From: Epiperipatus broadwayi | Lineage: Eukaryota > Animalia > Onychophora | Length of the DNA stretch: 64,000 nt | Direction: 5' to 3' | NCBI GenBank assembly: GCA_028023455.1 | Contig: JAQFVV010000002.1 | Location: 4,650,001-4,714,000, forward strand | In this document: in pieces, positions 6,496-43,148 of the stretch | How positions within the stretch are numbered: the stretch's first letter is position 1 | How the letters are laid out: each line of letters opens with the position of its first letter | The notes under the pieces: model-generated | Seen by the model: only the letters and a program-made list of their open reading frames with translations | Databases searched by the model: none | Told to the model about the DNA's origin: nothing | Position numbers and translations under genes: made by a program

Positions 6496-6701
6496 GATAG
6501 ACAACTTGAAGTTCTATAGAGCATTTTAAACTGTCTATAATTAATGTTTTTTTTTTTTAAATAAATAAAGGTTCATTTATAAATTACTTCTTAAAATTAT
6601 TAAAAATGAAGAAATAATAAAACACATTCCTACACGAATACTTTTGCTGACTACACACACAATTCCACTCTTCTGTTGAAAGTAATATTTTTTCTTCTCA
6701 G

Positions 6702-7490
6702 CACTGCTGGACCAGAGGATATCTAAGATGGGCACTGGGAGCCAAGAGACAACAAGAAGTACCTTCAGTACTAGATATCAATGGTGCAAAGGTCTCTGGC
6801 CAACAAATGGTCATTCATATTGCTTCCTACTTTAAACAATTACTTTGGAAGAATCTGCCAGATGAACATCGCAGATGGGAAGGCTTGGATGACAAGCAGG
6901 AACATGGCATCACTGCAGATGCTATCAAAGACAGAGAGTCACATCTGCCTGATAGTGTGCACCCTGGCATGCATGCCATTCCGAAATTCTTATTGGCCCA
7001 TCTGGGTTATTTTTCTATTCCTATCATATTAAATATGATCAACCACCTTGCAAAACAGCAGAGAGTGATTAATGATCTCTACCCTGTTTCGCTTGTCCCA
7101 TTTCTTAAAAAGAACAAGGACCTGACAAATATTAAAAACATCAGACCCATTTCAATGTCACAGATTCTAATTAAAATTATTGAAGACGTCATTAAAGAGA
7201 AAATTCATTGTAAAATACTGGACCACATATCTCATTCTCAGTATGCCAAAAAGGGCATGTCTGCACTGACAGCGATTGGTGAAGTTAAGATTCTTTTCAA
7301 TTTCATACGCATTAAGAGACTTTCCAAGCCAATCGCAGTCCAACTAGATATCACTCAAGCATTTGACTCAGTCAACATTGGCTTATTATTAAACCAGCTT
7401 AAAGAGCTGAGCATATCAACAGAAATTATTCAAATATTGGATAATCTGCTGTATAACCGGCAGATCTTTATTTCTTCACATTTTAAGTAG
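6702..7490 (+). mobile_element. non-LTR reverse transcriptase N-terminal fragment with an uninterrupted reading frame
   Basis: ORF 6807-7490 contains PFLKKNKD..NIKNIRPIS...LIKIIE, QY..KG.SAL and LDITQAFDSVN (RT subdomains ~1-3). The frame stays open upstream to about 6690. There is no YADD domain. Confidence 0.85.
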
Positions 7491-12000: not shown

Positions 12001-12431
12001 TAATGAAATCCATGTTTTTTCTTCAATATTCTTATTTCTGCATCTATATTTATATAATATATATAAAATGTCTTATTATAACCTACATTCAATATTTATT
12101 AGTATATATTTCAATGTAGAATAATTTATCACTCTGAAATTGTACAACATATTATTTCTAAATAAAAATATTCTAAATCCAGCCAATTTTATACTTTTTT
12201 GTATTATATTCACTTCATAGTTAAATCAAGATATTTTATTTTATATAAACAGTCATCAGAAGTAACAGCCAATTTCAAGCTACGAATGGACTATAATTTA
12301 ACTTTATGGAGAGAATATAGCAATTATTAAAAAATTTGCACAATCCAAATTAAATATTTTTTTTTTTGAATAATTTGGCTGAATTGAGAATATTTTTTAA
12401 GAAATAATCTGTTATGTAAATTTTGAAGTGA

Positions 12432-15393
12432 TGTAACGGTATAAATTGTCCCTCCACGTAACAAAATCTAGAACATAGGCAAAATACACTAAAGCTGATA
12501 GAATCCAGATGCTGTGATCCAGAATCTGACCAACATTCAACCCTTCACCTCTGTTCAATGATTTACTACCCTATGGATGACATTCCTCAATGTACACAGA
12601 CAATCAATTCACTCTCAGTCCAGCAGTCACTCCCGGTAGGACAAGAGACTCATAATTGAACTAATTTATCACTTATTTGATAAGATATATACACATATGG
12701 CTAAGTAATTAATTATAGAACCTAACAGGCTGATCTACATATATATGAAATAGTGTATGTGCAATTAAATATAGAGTTGGACAAAATGAATTCATGGACA
12801 ATAAAATATGCAAACGAGTCATAATTTTAAATATGATTACTTTAATAAAACAATAACAAATAATAAATTAAAACATACCAAATTATATGGTGGGAACATG
12901 AGGTATAATGCTCGCAGGCATTAGATAACTGCTGAGATTCAAGTTATATATTTCATTATAAGCATTTAATAATGTGTATTGTGGTATTGGAATTTCATGC
13001 CTATATTAATTAATATGCCAAATTTCTAGCTTTATTGTAGTCTACTAGATCATGCAGAACTTTATAGCCAAAGCTATATAACTAACTATCAAAATGCTCC
13101 TATGGCATCTATTTAATACAAAGTTAATTCGAGCACGTAATTAGGCTCAGAGATATGCAGGTTAGCGTGTTAACCTAGATTAGGATGTATACTAATGCTA
13201 GATAAGTGTTTAACATAAAAGGGAGAGAAAACTGATTTATGATAGGTTTACCTATATTCTCTATGGCACATATTAAAATATTAACTAAGCAAAAAGGTGC
13301 GAATGAGTCATTATTCACGGGCTTCAGTCTCCAAAGACTCGGTTTGCCCTAATACCACTCAACCTGCCGCGAATAAGAACATTAGTAGTTCAGATAGATA
13401 AGTGTTATGAATCATCTAGGTCCTTGTGCCCTAGTTCTAAAAGTGTGCTTGAACCCGAACTAAAGTGGATGAGAGTGACCTCCGCCAGAACTCATTGAGA
13501 ATCATGCAGCAAGCTGATAAGTGTACATTGCGTACTTTGTAATGACACATTCGCAACTTATACATATATATAACGCAATCACGTAACATTACATTATTGT
13601 GCCTTAATATTAGATAGCGTATATTTGCATATCTATATAATTCAGTTCTCAAATTTAGTATTTTAAATATACTATTAAGGGACTAAATTAATTAGTAACT
13701 TAGTTTAATATTATCACCTGCGTCTCAACATAAATAAATCTAAGGAGGATAAAGCATATTTGCAGAGTAATTACGAATAAAATATTAAAATATGCTTTGA
13801 GAATATTTCCGTAACTAGTTCTGGTGATATATGAGTTATATATATAAATAGTTATAATTCATAACTAAAATTAAGCAAACTGCATAAAATAGCTAGATAA
13901 CTGATTATTGTAATATTGATACCCAAAACTTAATCAGTAACATAATATGATCTCGAAACAGCGAGTGAGAATGAAGAATAATACTTCAATTGATTAATAT
14001 TAAATTATAAGGAAGATTTGAAGTTATCTTCGCAAATCGATAAGTTAAAATGATATTTAGAAATACTTGCGGTTTCAAGTCATTTGGCATATTAAATACA
14101 CATATTATATTAAAATGATAAAATCATAAAACAAAATTGAATAGATTTAGAAATAGGCATAAAAGACCGCAGAAAATTATACATTTAAAATAGATTATTA
14201 GGAGTTTTACAATTTAAAAGAGAATTCGAGTTTTACATTATAAAAGAAATTTTATAATCAGGCAAGACTTAGCATTTAACAATCTTCTTTGTAAAGTTTA
14301 GTAAAGGTGTTTGATGAAAGCAGATTTAGTGAATAGCTAGCTTTTAACAATAGAAAAATGAAAGTCACAGTTTATAGACAAGAGCTCTGAGAAAATTTTA
14401 CCGTTTAGTTGTTTCCATTGCAGCTGGTTTTGAAGCACTTGGGATGATAATTAATAAGTTGACACTTGATGATGATGCACAGTTAACAGAGATTTACCAT
14501 GGGCTACTTTTGGCTGGTGATGGCATTAGGTTTCATTGGACCAAAGCTCTCCATTATCCGCGAGGAGAGGCGGTGAATTATGGCCTCTACTCGAACATTT
14601 TAAGGTGAAACCAGCATAGATTCGGCCTACAGTTCACTTTATATATATATATATGATTGATCCCCTTGTTAATAAAACTTCAAGTATTTATTATACCTTT
14701 TGAAATCTGCACACCTGTTATTTTTTTGCGTAGCTGAACAATCCATTTTATTTTAGCCAAACATTTAATTATTCCCACTGGCAGAAAAACTCATTTCTTT
14801 ATTTAGATAAACAATTTTAGCGATAACAAAGTAATTTAGATTCTGTTTTCCCGGCTTATCTTGTTAACATTATATATTTCAAACAATATCCACACTATTT
14901 TAGGACTGTTTTAGAACTAGATGTGTGACCTAAAATCGAATGTTATTTTTGACAAAATTACCCTGTAATTAGCAGAAAACACTTTATAACCAGAGGCAGT
15001 AGAATAAATGCAGAATAACAGGAGATATGTAAATGCGATTTCACTAATACAATAATAAAGTTGCTAAATAATTTACCTAAAATATTTTTTAAAATAGAAA
15101 TGTCTATAAAATGAATTTACCTATCTGTAATATATATATATATACCATTAACTTAAATAATTTAGAATAAAATATTTCCTAAATGAGAATTTTTATAAAA
15201 TTGATCCATATCTGTAATCTATACATATTCAATTAAATTACAAACATGCTGCTCACATATATATGTGATTCTGCATCTATAATAATTTAATGTTATTCAG
15301 ATGGGGTACTCTGGGAGTGTTTAAACCTGGCATATAGATAGATATGTGGGTAACATAAGTGAAATGGGCAGATGGATGAAATTGACCATTTCA
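12432..15393. repeat. left LTR (2962 bp)
   Basis: Hand alignment of the first ~670 bp to the right LTR gives 28 substitutions (~96% identity). TG...CA ends. Confidence 0.92.
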
Positions 15394-15747
15394 TATCCCC
15401 AAACTTACTTAAAAAAATTAAAAAAATGCCTTTACTTAATCTGGATTACACCCAAATTTAGAACTCTACTCCTATCATAACATATCTCAAAGTATTCCTA
15501 GCCTTGCTTACTATTATATTCAAGCTCCACCCCAATAAAACTTAGATTAAAATTAAGATATATAAAACAACAAAAAAAACTTCCTAAGCTAATGAGATAA
15601 TATAAATTTATATATATAAAACTATATTTCTAAAGTGATATAAAAAACAAATGTATAAGTAATATAGATGTTGTTAGTAAACCCCAGGGTTGGTTAGTTT
15701 AATATACGAGTAAAAGGTAGGTGTTTGATCCATGTTCTTATGATTGT

Positions 15748-17852
15748 TTAGGTAGGATCTGGGGGTTGTTTGATATCTGGGGCAGGTGATACGGTATCAA
15801 AAAATCCTAGGAGGTCATCATTTTCTGACACCCAATCATACTCACTCTCATCCATCCCATCAAACAGGGAGGGATTATCCTTAACTGTCTCCAGGCATTT
15901 GGCAAATGCACTTCCTTCAAAAGGAATCTCCCTACCTTTTCTATATTCATCGTATTCAGCACATAAATTAGTGTATAACTCATTAAAATAATGGCCACCA
16001 CACATGGCAGGTATCTCTTTAATTTCCCCCTTGGCATCACTCTTGGGGTCTTAGGTTTAAATCTGACCTTGGAAGCACACCAATCTCTACCTCTGTCAAT
16101 ATGCTGGTAACATGATATTTTGATCAGGGTTTGATCCCATTTATCAAAGGGTAAGTACTGTAAAAGAAACCCAAAGGATGGCTTATCTGGTGGTTTCTTG
16201 TGAAACACTGTTGAAAGATTGGCATGTAACTCAGACCAGCCAAATGGTTTCTCAATGGTCCTCCAAGGTTCACAACAAAACCAACCCTTCTCCAGACCAG
16301 GAGCAACAGCTTGATTTTCATCCAACCTACTATAACTGCTTTGAATAAACCTATGCTCCTGTTTGAACAGCTGCTTACTTTCTAAGGACTCTGGAGGTCT
16401 ACCTTGCCAGCAATGAAAGTCTCTGAAATCCTTCTGGCTCAAACTGCCTACTGTATTGGCCAACACTGCCAACTGTTGGTATTTCATGTGCCTAAACTTT
16501 AGTGGATGTCTATTGACACTATTCAGGACTCCCTGACCAGAGTGGTATACCATCCTATACTCAAGTTCCTGCAGTGCCACTCTCCATCTCACTGTGGGAC
16601 TACTGTTACCAACCTCCAGATCAATGATATTAAATTTTTCAGCTCCACTCGATATTCCTAGCTCAGATGGACCTTTCTCGGTTTCTTTCTCTTCTCTAAC
16701 TTCCTGGTGAAGCTCTATTTGTTCAACTATTTCACCTAGTACTTTGGTTAGAATTACTATCTCTGCCTTTTCTATTTCTTTTGTTGGAATATATTCTACT
16801 TTGGTGATTGTTTCTGAAAGCAGTTTTTCTCTTTCTTCAATCATTTCTAAATCAACTTTTAATCTTTCTGTTCCATCACTTCCAGCTTCCAGCTTTTCTG
16901 CTCTTCATAAAGGCTCCATAATTTCAGGTATGATGGTCACTATTTCTTCCTCACTTAAGGGAATTAATTTAATAGTTTCCTTTATAACTTCTATTTCTTC
17001 CTTCTTAGTCCCAACTGTTTTTGCTTCCTTTGATATAATTTGGGTTGTAAGTTGTACAGTTTTTGTAACCTGCTCTAATTCAGCCATATACTCTGGTTCT
17101 TCTGTTTTGTCCCTTTCTTCTTCCACCGTACTATTACTATCCATGATATACTCAGCCAATTCACTACCTTCTTTCCTTATCCTCATCTCTATCTCTTTCT
17201 TCATTACCTCTTGCTCACATGGACCTTTCTTGGTTTCTGCTATACTCTGGTATGTCTGATCTTCTGTACTCTCTTGCTTGTTCAACTCCTCTCTTCTATC
17301 TACATTATCTCTCTTTTCTTTCTGATCTATCTTGGTGGTCTCCAAAATTACAACTTTCCCCATCTTTGGACTTGCAACCTTCTCCTCCAGACATTTCTGC
17401 CTTTTCCTCTGTTGTATTTCCTCTGGATCAGGCTGACATGAAACCTCTGCTCTTTTCTTCATCTGTGCAGCCGCTTCCTCGATATATTGCTCAAAGATTC
17501 TTTCTATCTTTAGCCGCTCCCCCTTATGGTCCTCTTCTATGTCTAAAATTTCTCTTCGATAAACTTCCTCTAGCTCTAATAGTTTTTTTGCAGGGTCACC
17601 ACCACTAGGCAAACCAGACTGGTGGCACAACTGGTATAACAAATCATTCTGGTGTTGAAGAGCCACCCGGTCTTTTTTTAACATTAAGGCCATCCTGGCC
17701 CCTTTCTTTTTTATCATTAAGGACACCTCCAATATCATGGTCCATGTTGCCTTGGTATATCCCTCATGGGCTATTTCACTGAATGCTGTCTCCTTTATAC
17801 TATCATTCATTATTAATTTTCTAAATATTCTATGAATATGGTTAACCACCAC
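15748..17852 (-). pseudogene. disrupted ~700-codon orphan ORF inside the LTR element
   Basis: ORFs 16905-17852 and 15807-16844 are in the same frame, separated only by TGA at 16905-16907 (intervening codons read RAEKLEAGSDGTERLKVDLE). A frameshift between about 16050 and 16005 leads into 15748-16005 (KSDAKGEIKEIPAMCGGHYF...). The N-terminal half is E/K-rich. Confidence 0.8.
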
Positions 17853-18719
17853 TCTCCCCTCCCCGAATGGTTCTACCTGTGGTCCAACTTTCCAATAGCC
17901 TCAGCCTACTCCAACTTACTACTAGCTTGCCCTATCTCCATTATATATAGTTTCATACTTAACTCAAAACATTTGGCTAAATTATAATAGCTATGTCTAA
18001 TATGGTTATTAAATTTTCTGCCTAATATAGATATAGTTCATAAATTACAATACTAGAAATTTGAAATATAGGTTATATAAAATTCATGAATCAGTATTTA
18101 TTAAAACAAAATTTATTCTTACCAAGTGCCTATCCCCTTTTAAATCAACTGCAATCGTTTCTATTAATAATAAAAAAATTATAAAGATTTATTATTGTGT
18201 TTAATATTATTATTATCGTTACTATGCCAGTTTTAATTTTATTTGAGTACTCATACAATAACATCATTTATAAATCTTGCACAACTCGTTTCATTGTCCG
18301 TATCCAACTCCAAAATATTACCAAAATATTACAAAAACATTAGATTTCTTTTACTATTAATATGCTTTTCTCACTTCTGATGACAACATTTATAATGAGA
18401 GACATATGGTCTTCTCTGAGCACCAGTCATCAGTGAACAAGTAACATTAAGCTTGTGCACATCATATATCAAAAAAAATTTTTATTTGCTTATTAAACCA
18501 CTCCAATAATAACGAAGTATTTCACTTCAATAGCCCCATGTGTATATATCCACTCTGTGCCAGCAAAAGAGAACAACAAAAAAAAAATTATTTGGCCTCT
18601 CTCTCCAGTATATGCCAATAAAAAAATATTTTACATATATATAGTATGGAAGAAAAATATTTTTTTATCCCCATATTATTTTATAATTTTAACTTTTGGC
18701 TAACGGGATTGGTGACTTG

Positions 18720-20170
18720 ACAAAGTTTGAACCCAAACAAAAAAAAACAATTTTTATTAATACATGATATATCCCGTGTTAATATATTATAAACATACAT
18801 ACAACATATCTTGATAACAGAAGTTATGGCATATAAATAAAAAATTTTAAAAAAATCTGGAAAAATTTCGTATATATATATTTAATGACACAGAGTGAGA
18901 AGATATGGATCAACTCAGTGTATGAAATAAACTACTATTTCCCAATAAAGTATTCGAACCTGGACGAAATAATTTTCTACATGCATTAATGTCAATGTAT
19001 AAATAGTTATGCCCACACATTGATGCGTATTCGGTGTGGGAACTAGATCGAGGACCTCATGTTTGGATATCCGGAATCGTGTTTAAAAAAAAAATTTATA
19101 CCACATATATATCAAAAAAAAACTTTACATCCCATATAACTCTTTTCTGCTATACTTTTATCCTTTTATTTAAACCGAAATTATCATTTAGGTATGTGCG
19201 TGTTTACATTATAAAATCTATATTGTTGCGTTAAAAACTCGGGGGGGGGGGGAATCAATAAATATATTTTTTTGGAAAAAAAAAATTTAGTACACATATA
19301 TATATATTTACCCCCTTCCACCTATCCTTTCTTTCTCTAACCGCCTGCATTCAATTAATGGTCATGTAAAACAATTACCGAAATCTAACATCTGGGCATT
19401 TATAATCCGAGAGAAAAATTGTACAAATATATATTTCCTATTTCCACATACATTCGATTGAAGGTAGGGGAAAATAATTAACGAATCAAACAAAAGAAAC
19501 TAATACTTATACACATTCAATTTAGGGTTATGGAAATAATTAACGAATCGAGCAAAAACAAAAAATTAATATATATATATTGAGGGATTTAAAAAAACAA
19601 AGTTTTTTAAAATTTATTCTACTTTGTAACCTGAATTCGGAAAAATATTTTACTCAGGATATATGTGTGATTTATACAATTGAAATCCCAGAATCTGAAG
19701 AGAAAATAATTTATACATACATCAATCAAAGGGAGTGTGGGTATATTATTCGAAATCCCTAATTTACAGTGTCAGAACTCGGACAAAAAAAATTATACAC
19801 ACATATATGCACATCTCTTCTCTCTACATATATTCGGTTCAGGAAGAAAAATTTCACATACACATATACAGCTAACATGCTCATGATCGTGGGAGTAATC
19901 GAATAGACTCAAAAGTTTGGGTGGTCAGAACCTAGAAAAAAAATTACACATATACAACGAGCGATATGGGAACATACCCACCTCAATATCCCCTCTCAGG
20001 TATGCAGATTTATATTCAAATGCCCTATTTGGTACGTCAGAATCCGGAGGAAAAAATCTACATATGCATTTTCCCTCTCTTGTGCCAGATTCATTCATGG
20101 TTTGCTCAGGGTCATGTAACTAAGTAACTGCCCCTGTTGAGCGATCAGAACCTGGAGAAAAAAAAACCTA
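18720..20170. repeat. degenerate repeat/spacer array (about 13 units) inside the LTR element
   Basis: Recurring motif CAGAAYCYGGA-(A-run)-TTTAYACATATA. It is clearest at 19689, 19773, 19926, 20038 and 20146, with weaker copies near 18729, 18855, 18956, 19070, 19237, 19404, 19631 and 19838. Spacers are dissimilar. Confidence 0.7.
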
Positions 20171-23152
20171 TGTAACGGTAAGAATTGTCCCTCCACGTAA
20201 CAAAATATAGAACATAGGCAAAATACACTAAAGCTGATTGAATCCAGATGCTGTGATCCAGAATCTGACCAACATTCCACCCTTCACCTCTGCTCAATGA
20301 TTTACTACCCTACGAATGACATTCCTCAACATACACAGACAATCAATTCACTCTCAGTCCAGCAGTCACTCCCGGTAGAACAAGAGATTCATAATTGAAC
20401 TAATTTATCAGTGATTTGATAAGATATATACACATATGGCTAAGTAATTAATTATAGAACTTAACAGGCTGATCTACATATATATGAAATAGTGTATGTG
20501 CAATTAAATATAGAGTTGGACAAAATGAATTCATGGACAATAAAATATGCAAAGGAGTTATAATTTTAAATATGATTACTTTAATAAAACAATAGCAAAC
20601 AATAAATTAAAACATACCAAATTATATGGTGGGAACATGAGGTATAATGCTCACAGGCATTATATAACTGCTGAGATTCAAGTTATATATTTCATCATAA
20701 GCATTTAATAATGTGTATTGCGGTATTGGAATTTCATGCCTATATTAATTAATATGCCAAATTTCTAGCTTTATTGTAGTCTACTAGATCATATGGAACT
20801 TTATAGCCAAAGCTATATAACTAACTATCATAACGCTCCTATGGCATCTATTTAATACAAAGTTAATTCGAGCACGTAATTAGGCTCAGAGATATGCAGG
20901 TTAGCGTGTTAACCTAGATTAGGATGTATACTAATGCTAGATAAGTGTTTAACATAAAAGGGAGAGAAAACTGATTTATGATAGGTTTACCTATATTCTC
21001 TATGGCACATATTAAAATATTAACTAAGCAAAAAGGTGTGAATGAGTCATTATTCACGAGCTTCAGTCTCCGAAGACTCGGTTTGTTCTAAGACCGCTCA
21101 ACCTGCCGCAAATAAGAACATTAGTAGTTCAGGTAGTCGGATAAGCATTATGAATCATCTAGGTCCTTGTGCCCTAGTTCTAAAAGTGTGCTTGAACCCA
21201 AACTAAAGTGGATAAGAGTGACCTCTGCCAGCACATCATCAAGAATCATGCAGCAAGCTGATAAGTGTACATTGCGTACTTTGTAAAGACACATCCGCAA
21301 CTTATACATATATATAACGCAATCGCGTAACATTACATTATCGTGCCTTAATATTAGATAGCATATATTTGCATATCTATATAATTTAGTTCTCAAATTT
21401 TGTATTTTAAATATACTATTAAGGGACTAAATTAATTAGTAACCTAGTTTAATATTATCACCTGCATCTCAATATAAATAAATCTAAGGAGGATAAAGCA
21501 TATTTGTGGGGTAATTATGAATAAAATATTAAAATATGCTTTGAGAATATTTAAAATATTAAAATATGCTTTGAGAATATTTATGTGGCTAGTTCCGGTG
21601 ATATATGAGTTATATATATAAATACTTATAATTCATAACTAAAATTAAGCAAACTGCATAAAATAGCTAGATAACTGATTACTGTAATATTGATACCCAA
21701 AACTTAATCAGTAACATAATATGATCTCGAACAGTGAGTGAGAATGAAGAATAATACTTCAATTGATTAATATTAAATTATAAGGAATATTTGAAATTAT
21801 CTTTGCAAATAGATAAGTTAAAATGATATTTAAAAACACTTGCGGTTTCGAGTCATTTGGCATATTAAATACACATATTATATTAAAATGATAAAATCAT
21901 AAAACAAAATTGAATAGATTTAGAAATAGGCATAAAAGACCGTAGAAAATTATACATTTAAAATAGATTATTAGGAGTTTTACAGTTTAAAAGAGAATTT
22001 AAATTTTATAATAAGGCAAGACTTAGCATTTAACAATTTTCTTTGTAGATTTTAGTAAAGGTGTTTGATGAAAGCAGATTTAGTGAATAGCTAGCTTTTA
22101 AAAATAGAGAAACAAAAGTCACAGTTTATAGACAAGAGCTCTGAGAAAATTTTACCATTTAGTTGTTTCCATTGCAGCTGGTTTTGAAGCACTTGGGATG
22201 ATAATTAATAAGTTGACACTTGATGATGATGCACAGTTAACAGAGATTTTTTATGGGCTACTTTTGGCTGGTGATGGCATTAGGTTTCATTGGACCGAAG
22301 CTCTCCATTCTTCGCGAGGAGAGGCAGTGAATTACGGCCTTTACTTGAATATTTTAAGGTGAAACCGGCATAGATTCGGCCTACAGTTCACTTAATATAT
22401 ATATGATTGATCCCCTTGTTAATAAAACTTCAAGTATTTATACCTTTTGAAATCTGCACACCTGTTATTTTTTTGTGTAGCTGAACAATCCATTTTATTT
22501 TAGCCAAATATTTAATTATTCCCACTGGCAGAAAAACTCATTTCTTTATTTAGATAAACAATTTTAGCAATAACAAAGTAATTTAGATTCTGTTTTCCCT
22601 GCTTATCTTGTTAACATTATATATTTCAAACAATATCCATGCTATTTTAGGACTGTTTTAGGACTAGATGTGTGACCTACATTAAATCTGTTTTACAAAA
22701 TCGAATGTGATTTTTGACAAAATTACCCTGTAATTAGCAGAAAACACTTTATAACCAGAGGCAGTAGAATAAATGCAGAATAACAGGAGATATGTAAATG
22801 CGATTTCACTAATACAATAATAAAGTTGCTAAATAATTTAACTAAAATATTTTTTAAAATAGAAATGTCTATAAAATGAATTTACCTATCTGTAATATAT
22901 ATACCATTAACATAAATAATTTAGACTAAAATATTTCCTAAATGAGAAATATTTATAAAATTGATCCATATCTGTAATCTATACACATTCAATTAAATTA
23001 CAGACGTACTGCTCGCATATATATGTGATTCTGCATCTATAATAATTTAATGTTATTCAGATGGGTACTCTCGGAGGGTTCAAACCTGGCATATAGATAG
23101 ATATGTGCATAACATAAGTGAAACAGGCAGATGCATGAAATTGCCCGTTTCA
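20171..23152. repeat. right LTR (2982 bp)
   Basis: Colinear with 12432-15393. Carries a private ~30-bp tandem duplication (AAAATATTAAAATATGCTTTGAGAATATTT, about 21522-21582) and small indels. Confidence 0.92.
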
Positions 23153-23422
23153 GTGATAAATTATCAAATACTGAAATTTATGCTAATGAATTATTGAATG
23201 TAAAATATAATAGTAAAGATATTTTATATATATTATACAAATTTATATATAGATGGAAGAAAAATATTATAGTAAACATGAAATATCATTACTATATATA
23301 AATATTAGAATGTGTAGTGTGATTACATCATTGTCTTTTCTGATTTCAATGTTGCATTTAATGTTAGACCAAATGCTGTTAAATTACTTATTAATAAAAA
23401 ATATGTTTTTCAAAAAATCAAT

Positions 23423-43057: not shown

Positions 43058-43148
43058 TGTCAAGCGTTGGTGGCTGAGTGGTTATCACACCTGCCTTGCA
43101 AGCAGTTGTCCCAGGTTTCACTTCTCTGCCAATGCTTTGATGTATAAA
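43058..43148 (+). mobile_element. tRNA-Gly-derived short SINE, copy C
   Basis: TGTCAA-GCGTTGGTGGCTGAGTGGTTATCACACCTGCCTTGCAAGCAGTTGTCCCAGGTTTCACTTCTCTGCCAATGC-TTTGATGTAT(A)n. 16-bp TSD AAAAAATCTTTAAAGC at 43042-43057 and 43149-43164. Confidence 0.85.

Follow-up and report, generated by a model that had tools for sequence, protein, structure and literature searches.

How can a retroelement multiply across a genome when no protease, reverse transcriptase or integrase can be recognised in it, and what would such an element keep a long reading frame for? These questions are raised by a 10,721-bp element in the velvet worm Epiperipatus broadwayi (Onychophora), which occupies positions 12,432 to 23,152 of a 64,000-nucleotide stretch of contig JAQFVV010000002.1 (GenBank assembly GCA_028023455.1, positions 4,650,001 to 4,714,000, forward strand). 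This whole stretch is hereafter called the window, and positions refer to it unless a copy is named. A first-pass annotation, made from the letters alone, had described the element as bounded by long terminal repeats (LTRs), devoid of pol genes and loaded with cargo of its own. Our best explanation, to which we give a probability of about 70%, is that it represents an older copy of an abundant, long-lived non-autonomous LTR retrotransposon family, lying on the minus strand of the window. Here we set out the evidence for the family, the behaviour of its open reading frame (ORF), the orientation and likely propagation of the element, and its place among known systems.

A mobile LTR retrotransposon family

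The element is built on two direct repeats (12432-15393, 2962 bp, and 20171-23152, 2982 bp) that are 95.7% identical over 2928 aligned bases (Kimura two-parameter distance, K2P, 0.045). They form eight collinear blocks, each 94-97% identical, and differ by 92 transitions and 34 transversions in the full alignment. Both LTRs start with TGTAACGG and end in TTTCA, which makes them TG...CA repeats, and their termini form a short imperfect inverted repeat as in the order of LTR elements (TGTAACGGTAAG versus TGAAACGGTCAG, 10/12; that is, TGTAACGGTAAG and CTGACCGTTTCA are complementary at 10 of 12 positions). GTGA stands on both flanks (12428-12431 and 23153-23156). The interior measures 4777 bp (15394-20170), and the LTRs make up 55% of the element. 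Re-alignment and reading of the ends thus bore out the first-pass annotation in its coordinates, repeat lengths, TG...CA ends, GTGA duplication and description of the element as more than half LTR.

The source assembly comprises 5.6 Gb at about 25% G+C, and the best 40-150 of thousands of candidates were scored in each genome search. The window LTR gave 3096 first-look candidates, and the 40 scored were full-length LTRs, 89-94% identical and spread over many contigs; a diverged LTR, from copy L037, gave 3111 candidates and the interior 845. Twelve of 30 fetched LTR loci were solo LTRs with no interior within 1.5 kb, each carrying its own perfect 4-bp target-site duplication (ATAC, CATG, TTAT, GTAG, CTAT, ACAG, ACAA and, several times, ATAT), and three further full elements have the duplications CCAT, GTAT and ATAT. 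Since these duplications are distinct from copy to copy, the copies must be the work of an integrase that favours AT-rich or (TA)n targets. Recurrence of LTR and interior across the genome with different 4-bp duplications excludes a chance origin, and it rules out the case that the earlier note had named as fatal to its multi-copy, integrase-inserted family, namely a single copy inside a larger segmental duplication. We are therefore dealing with a real, mobile LTR retrotransposon family of a thousand copies or more.

The other LTR pairs differ by 1.2-3.0%, and by 8.5% in a diverged subfamily (K2P range 0.012-0.085). Set against these pairs, the window's 0.045 makes it a middle-aged copy in a recently active family. 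At least four subfamilies are represented among about 22 copies, with LTRs 70-95% alike.

Protease, reverse transcriptase and integrase were found in none of these roughly 22 copies, which are a sample rather than a full census. Pfam searches of the long frames of the interior and of the copies gave no match, and a six-frame motif scan of the window interior revealed neither CCHC nor HHCC motifs nor a D[TS]G protease motif; its single YxDD-like match sits in a stop-filled frame. The interior is pol-less, as first proposed. Its architecture is shared by all sampled subfamilies: seven near-full copies, the window included, have a 440-nt block at one LTR, then an ORF block (about 40% G+C) whose middle varies, and 2.1-2.3 kb of AT-rich sequence at the other LTR. 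LTR pairs on the same contig lie 7.0-8.4 kb apart, start to start. Three loci picked because their ORF showed 40-51% amino-acid identity proved to be diverged subfamilies with the same layout and LTRs 70-78% identical, and an LTR junction follows the ORF end by about 350-650 nt in 11-12 of 15 ORF-bearing loci. With no pol in the sampled copies, the family would have to be mobilised in trans. One diverged copy (L039) also carries a tandem duplication of the first ~100 nt of the LTR at the interior/LTR junction (L039:8156-8342) and a long (TA/AT)-type simple repeat at about 6700-7050 of its interior.

Enzymes are available in the same genome. An integrase search returned 16,902 candidates. Many of these belong to identical, intact pol-type frames 1489 codons long, and further such frames measure about 1258 and about 1150 codons; autonomous helpers therefore exist. 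None of the 150 integrase places listed comes closer than about 170 kb to any of the listed ORF places. As a separate observation, the identity and intactness of these frames imply that several LTR retrotransposon families were active very recently.

The reading frame and its evolution

The single ORF of the window starts with an ATG at 17810 and ends at 15750-15748, a length of about 686 codons that is interrupted twice, by an in-frame stop at 16905-16907 and by a frameshift near 16005-16022. Defect-free frames occur elsewhere, of 576 codons in copy L040 and of 487-522 codons in L037. The ORF frame holds 0-1 stops versus 14-35 predicted by base composition, the other five frames hold 1-53, and G is enriched and T depleted at codon position 1, a base periodicity of the coding type. 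The frame is real. Its product begins with an N-terminal module (MNDSIKE... in the window type) followed by a Glu/Lys-rich stretch, in place of which the L033-L035 types have a coiled-coil stretch. Then comes a conserved domain of about 220 residues with Trp and Cys positions fixed in the alignment, running from SSPT[VM]RW by way of CWQGRPPE and FCCEPW as far as DWCA.K.RF.PKT.RVM; its amino-acid identity between subfamilies is 45-56%. The C-terminus is a basic tail ending in ...IKQPPDPT.

Searched against the genome, the ORF gave 1364-1874 candidates with amino-acid identities from 100% down to 40%. Relatives outside the repeat family were found neither in Pfam, a word-index search and the ESM Atlas nor among PDB sequences. 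A profile search of 1.84 billion representative proteins returned one match, a repeat protein, which we judged spurious as one 30-residue stretch was matched eight times. AlphaFold, given a 17-sequence alignment of the orphan domain, reached a predicted local distance difference test (pLDDT) score of about 37. The ORF is thus an orphan, as the first-pass annotation had it. The same annotation counted it as cargo, a description that does not hold: the ORF sits at the same place in every subfamily, even where LTRs are only 70-75% alike, and on the sense strand set by the tRNA-Lys site described below. It is a fixed part of the element and not a recent capture.

The ratio of nonsynonymous to synonymous substitution rates (dN/dS, Nei-Gojobori) is 0.4-0.5, a value on which we do not rely because the codon-position counts are flat and there are about 2.7 transitions for each transversion. 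When copies are compared, the three positions carry nearly equal shares of the differences (for example 64/64/70 and 73/73/70), and the same holds for sites fixed within but differing between subfamilies, counted as site patterns (28/32/30, 31/25/29, 18/18/18). The amino-acid sequence therefore drifts nearly neutrally. LTR pairs put the decay after insertion at 0.6-4% per copy, small against the 25-30% by which subfamilies differ, so most of the divergence arose in active lineages. In a simulation of 576 codons at 10% neutral change, 5.7 stops were expected and the probability of none was 0.004, indels uncounted; the listed ORF copies have 0-5 stops, mostly 0-3, per 200-270 codons, about what decay after insertion alone would give. 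We conclude, for an alignment whose copies were picked for being stop-free, that active lineages appear to have held the frame open without constraining most residues.

The ORF has also exchanged parts. A subfamily of the L034 type lacks the orphan domain and has a same-strand module of 171 codons instead (L034:4703-5215, minus). This module drew 21,435 genome candidates, of which the closest (72-82%) are other copies of the pol-less family; next, at 52-56% identity to the module, stands a very large group of intact frames of 445-693 codons. The coiled-coil piece just upstream of the module in L034 weakly matches the N-terminal part of the frames of 445-472 codons (24-28%). Judging from the sequence, the abundant family would encode a coiled-coil plus helical-domain protein, a layout found in many retroelement Gag proteins, and we infer that it is Gag-like; probably it is the structural gene of another very successful retroelement. 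Pfam does not recognise this family, a word search of a 5.8-billion-protein collection found no match to it, and a genome-wide search with Retrotrans_gag (PF03732) gave 16 hits, none linked to it or to the pol-less family. Chimeric ORFs are as expected from template switching between co-packaged RNAs, which makes the abundant family, or an autonomous relative of it, the first helper candidate.

Orientation, propagation and rival explanations

The orientation of the element is set by its primer site. Read on the minus strand, the right junction shows the same order in 11 copies: the LTR end, then TA, GG, a T-run, CTCCRGGTTC and an 18-mer. The primer-binding site of tRNA-Lys1,2 is TGGCGCCCAACGTGGGGC (PMC8775094). 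The 18-mer is TGGCACCCAACGTGGGGC in copies L019 and L035, agreeing with that site at 17/18 positions, and TGGCACCCAACATGGGGC in L014 (16/18). With at most three edits allowed, the tRNA-Lys1,2 site occurs nowhere in the 365 kb of fetched sequence except at the junction position, and shuffled sequence never produced it. Because this site adjoins the right LTR on the minus strand, the minus strand is very probably the sense strand. The orientation fits the strand of the ORF and of the L034 module, and it makes the best-conserved LTR end the U5: the first ~100 nt of the LTR on the plus strand are about 89% alike between subfamilies, versus about 72% for the LTR overall. At the opposite end, the minus strand of 15394-15440 shows an invariant arrangement of a T-rich box and AAGTAAGTTTGGGGA-TA, followed by the 3' LTR; 10 of the 15 bases of AAGTAAGTTTGGGGA-TA are purines, and box and tract together may be an impure, putative polypurine tract. 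Self-priming of the Tf1 type was considered and rejected, since neither junction matches the LTR over 9 nt or more.

Beside the 5' LTR, three units are stacked on the minus strand at a spacing of 110-113 nt, each with a T-run, CTCCRGRTTC and a primer-site-like stretch. The repeat array of the first-pass annotation survives in this form; the other tandem repeats are tiny, and an array carried as cargo was rejected. The region of the units recurs in copies L002-L026. A unit head looks like the end of the LTR with its spacer, as though tandem copying had taken in both the LTR end and the primer site; close similarity to the real tRNA-Lys site is confined to the unit next to the LTR. The leader (17811-20129) contains no stop-free stretch of at least 80 codons on either strand, and its stop-free pieces look like AT-rich noise when translated. 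The features are collected in Table 1.

Table 1. Features of the element in window coordinates; strands follow the proposed orientation.
Feature	Position	Strand	Remark
Left 4-bp target-site duplication	12428-12431		GTGA
LTR, 2962 bp	12432-15393	-	3' LTR in the element's own orientation
Conserved block directly upstream of 3' LTR	15394-15440	-	Putative polypurine-tract-like plus-strand primer region; all subfamilies
Single ORF, ~686 codons	15748-17810	-	ATG 17810-17808, stop 15750-15748
Conserved orphan domain of ORF	16023-16655	-	~211 codons in the window
Non-coding AT-rich 5' leader, ~2.3 kb	17811-20129	-	DNA-level conservation in all copies
Three stacked ~110-nt units	19925-20166	-	Heads at 20166, 20056, 19943
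Degenerate tRNA-Lys1,2 primer-binding site	20130-20147	-	Window reads TGATCGCTCAACAGGGGC
23-nt spacer between LTR end and primer site	20148-20170	-	T-run of variable length; plus strand GGAGA(9)CCTA
LTR, 2982 bp	20171-23152	-	5' LTR in the element's own orientation
Right 4-bp target-site duplication	23153-23156		GTGA

In its own orientation the element would thus run from the 5' LTR (23152 to 20171) through the 23-nt spacer, a decayed tRNA-Lys primer site and the 2.3-kb non-coding leader to the ~686-codon ORF, and from there through about 350 nt, ending in the T-box and G-rich purine tract, to the 3' LTR (15393 to 12432). We propose that it depends on the enzymes of an autonomous LTR element in the same genome. 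These would package its RNA, reverse-transcribe it from a tRNA-Lys-type primer and insert the product, preferably at AT or ATAT sites and with duplication of 4 bp. Such a helper would be expected to have family-like TGTAACGGT...ACCGTTTCA ends, a tRNA-Lys site and 4-bp target-site duplications. The ORF occupies the position where gag would sit. It may supply a loosely constrained structural or RNA-binding substitute for Gag, or translation of the RNA may itself be what matters; in either role, the family would be a semi-autonomous parasite of its helper.

Several observations weigh against this explanation. No helper was identified, and the search for pol-bearing copies was not exhaustive, with 40-150 candidates scored each time. 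Most copies, the window and young ones included, have a degenerate primer site (about 14/18), and the site lies 22-25 nt from the LTR versus the usual 0-5. The presumed polypurine tract contains T's, and a cleaner purine run, GGAGA(9), stands by the other LTR on the plus strand. TATA and AATAAA motifs occur near the 3' end of the LTR on the plus strand, and none within 415 nt on the minus strand. A leader of 2.3 kb is unusual. The L034-type subfamily has spread without the orphan domain, so that the domain is not needed in cis, and for a Gag nature of the L034 module neither Pfam nor PDB gave a match, its single-sequence AlphaFold model reaching a pLDDT of 37.

Part of this evidence can be turned into a reading of the element on the opposite strand. 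GGAGA(9) would then serve as polypurine tract and the invariant TATCCCCAAACTTAC that follows the left LTR as an unusual primer site. The ORF would be an antisense accessory gene, resembling the antisense ORFs of plant Retand, Grande and RIRE2 but left over once gag-pol had been lost. In all copies a purine-only run of 11-14 nt, GGAGA(7-10), does stand 4 nt before the right LTR; the final 160-290 nt of the plus-strand LTR contain TATAAA, AATAAA and ATTAAA; on the minus strand, a candidate TATA box precedes the ATG of the ORF by about 130 nt; and antisense ORFs accompanied by repeats are known from other elements (PMC11963269). What makes this reading very doubtful is the 17/18 tRNA-Lys1,2 site by the right LTR on the minus strand, with nothing tRNA-like or self-priming at the left junction. 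The purine run moreover varies among copies in length and composition, as an unconstrained homopolymer does, the ORF shares the strand and layout of the abundant coiled-coil ORF family, and the best-conserved stretch of the LTR is its plus-strand start, as is expected of a U5 in the minus orientation.

Two further explanations leave the orientation as it is. The family could be an ordinary internal-deletion derivative of an autonomous element with the same LTRs that is still present and was missed by limited sampling. The share of candidates scored leaves room for this, as do the many integrase candidates with their intact pol frames and an L034-type interior that combines a module from another element family with possible protease-like debris. 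The lack of pol in about 22 copies of one layout, from at least four subfamilies with LTRs up to 30% different, speaks against it, together with the absence of any LTR pair more than 8.4 kb apart among those listed and the distance of at least about 170 kb between listed integrase and ORF places; we regard it as quite improbable. The other explanation concerns the ORF, which could be functionless for the element, a decaying former gag or captured sequence that looks open in chosen copies. Substitutions flat over codon positions, the fixed differences between subfamilies included, are what it predicts; most copies have 1-5 stops, the frame is broken or partly deleted in young copies, the L034 type does without the orphan domain, and the aligned copies were chosen stop-free. 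It remains unlikely, as subfamilies about 25-30% apart still have open frames of 487-576 codons, the stops per copy fit decay after insertion alone and not the whole divergence, and base composition has the periodicity of coding sequence. The non-autonomous family read on the minus strand is thus the explanation that we carry forward. A stronger claim can be made tentatively at best, with the odds against it: that a long-lived animal lineage without gag-pol (LTRs 25-30% apart, pairs down to 1.2%) has kept an element-specific, module-swapping protein without relatives, selected for its frame and not its sequence. This would amount to a "Gag substitute" of a new kind, or to a cis signal that depends on translation, by which a parasite of retrotransposons could endure.

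Some features lie to the side of this argument. The first-pass annotation noted a frame embedded in the LTR. We place it at LTR positions of about 981-1257 (window 13412-13688 and 21151-21427), where 92 codons on the minus strand are open in most close copies. In diverged subfamilies the DNA is well conserved and the frame is broken, so this claim could be upheld for the DNA and not for the frame. The block surpasses the LTR average in conservation between subfamilies (70-77% when translated) and is a conserved DNA block, perhaps regulatory, and not a maintained ORF. ARAGORN called no tRNA genes in the window; positions 43064-43136 (plus strand) match the Rfam tRNA family at 29.5 bits, barely above the cut-off of 29, and may be a short interspersed element derived from a tRNA or a decayed tRNA gene. 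Outside the element, 6807-7490 (plus strand) holds a 227-codon ORF with reverse-transcriptase motifs of a non-LTR retrotransposon of the long interspersed type, and its nearest Atlas clusters carry PF00078.

Relation to known systems and meaning

LTR-bounded elements without pol that are amplified through the proteins of a helper, which they can outnumber, are known from mouse ETn/MusD and VL30 and from mammalian MaLR. The helper of such parasites is known and shares LTR and leader sequences with them. The onychophoran family is likewise LTR-bounded and pol-less; for it, no helper was identified. Its 4-bp target-site duplications, which are GTGA in the window and individual ones in sixteen other insertions, and a tRNA primer site by the 5' LTR place it in the LTR order; these duplications and the tRNA-Lys primer are compatible with Ty3/gypsy (Metaviridae), without defining it in an element that lacks pol.

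The first-pass annotation called the element LARD-like. Large retrotransposon derivatives (LARDs), first described in Triticeae and here taken with their size classes as summarised in PMC13570524, are non-autonomous elements of more than 4 kb with LTRs of about 3 kb, a conserved interior, no pol, high copy number, many solo LTRs and presumed mobilisation in trans (PMC13570524), and in all of these the window family resembles them. The likeness accordingly stands for the missing pol, the long LTRs and mobilisation in trans, and no reverse transcriptase, RNase H, integrase or protease was found in the ~22 sampled copies. It fails at the interior: strict LARDs are plant elements defined as non-coding, whereas this animal family maintains a frame-specific ORF of 487-686 codons that is open in several subfamilies. 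Semi-autonomous elements of the TR-GAG or BARE-2 type come close from the other side: they have LTRs and a primer site, their one ORF stands where gag belongs, and they lack enzymes (PMC13570524). In contrast to them, the window-type ORF shows no recognisable Gag, capsid or zinc-knuckle domain in comparisons with Pfam, PDB and profiles (no Pfam gag family, no CCHC, no PDB relative), it drifts nearly neutrally, and it follows a leader of 2.3 kb. Plant Retand, Grande and RIRE2 share the long non-coding interior with repeats and an additional, lineage-conserved ORF of unknown function (PMC11963269). Their extra ORFs are antisense to the genomic RNA and stand beside an intact gag-pol, whereas the window ORF is sense by its primer site, which lies on the ORF's own strand, and has no gag-pol beside it. 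The family is thus a non-autonomous LTR retrotransposon that works like a LARD or like TR-GAG/BARE-2 and falls outside the strict definition of each.

As a genomic parasite, it is unusual but not unprecedented, and its structure would be ordinary to a transposon specialist; the notable parts are the stacked primer sites and the orphan ORF, long kept, fast drifting and module-swapping. Non-autonomous LTR elements are well studied in plants and poorly described in animals. In this large invertebrate genome, a pol-less lineage can diversify into subfamilies, stay active and keep a fast-drifting orphan ORF open, and the exchange of ORF modules with a very abundant element family points to co-packaging with a helper. 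For annotation of the genome, thousands of 3-kb LTRs are to be masked, and the orphan ORF is not to be called a host gene. If the ORF could be assigned a role, one would learn which functions a hyperparasitic retroelement has to provide on its own.

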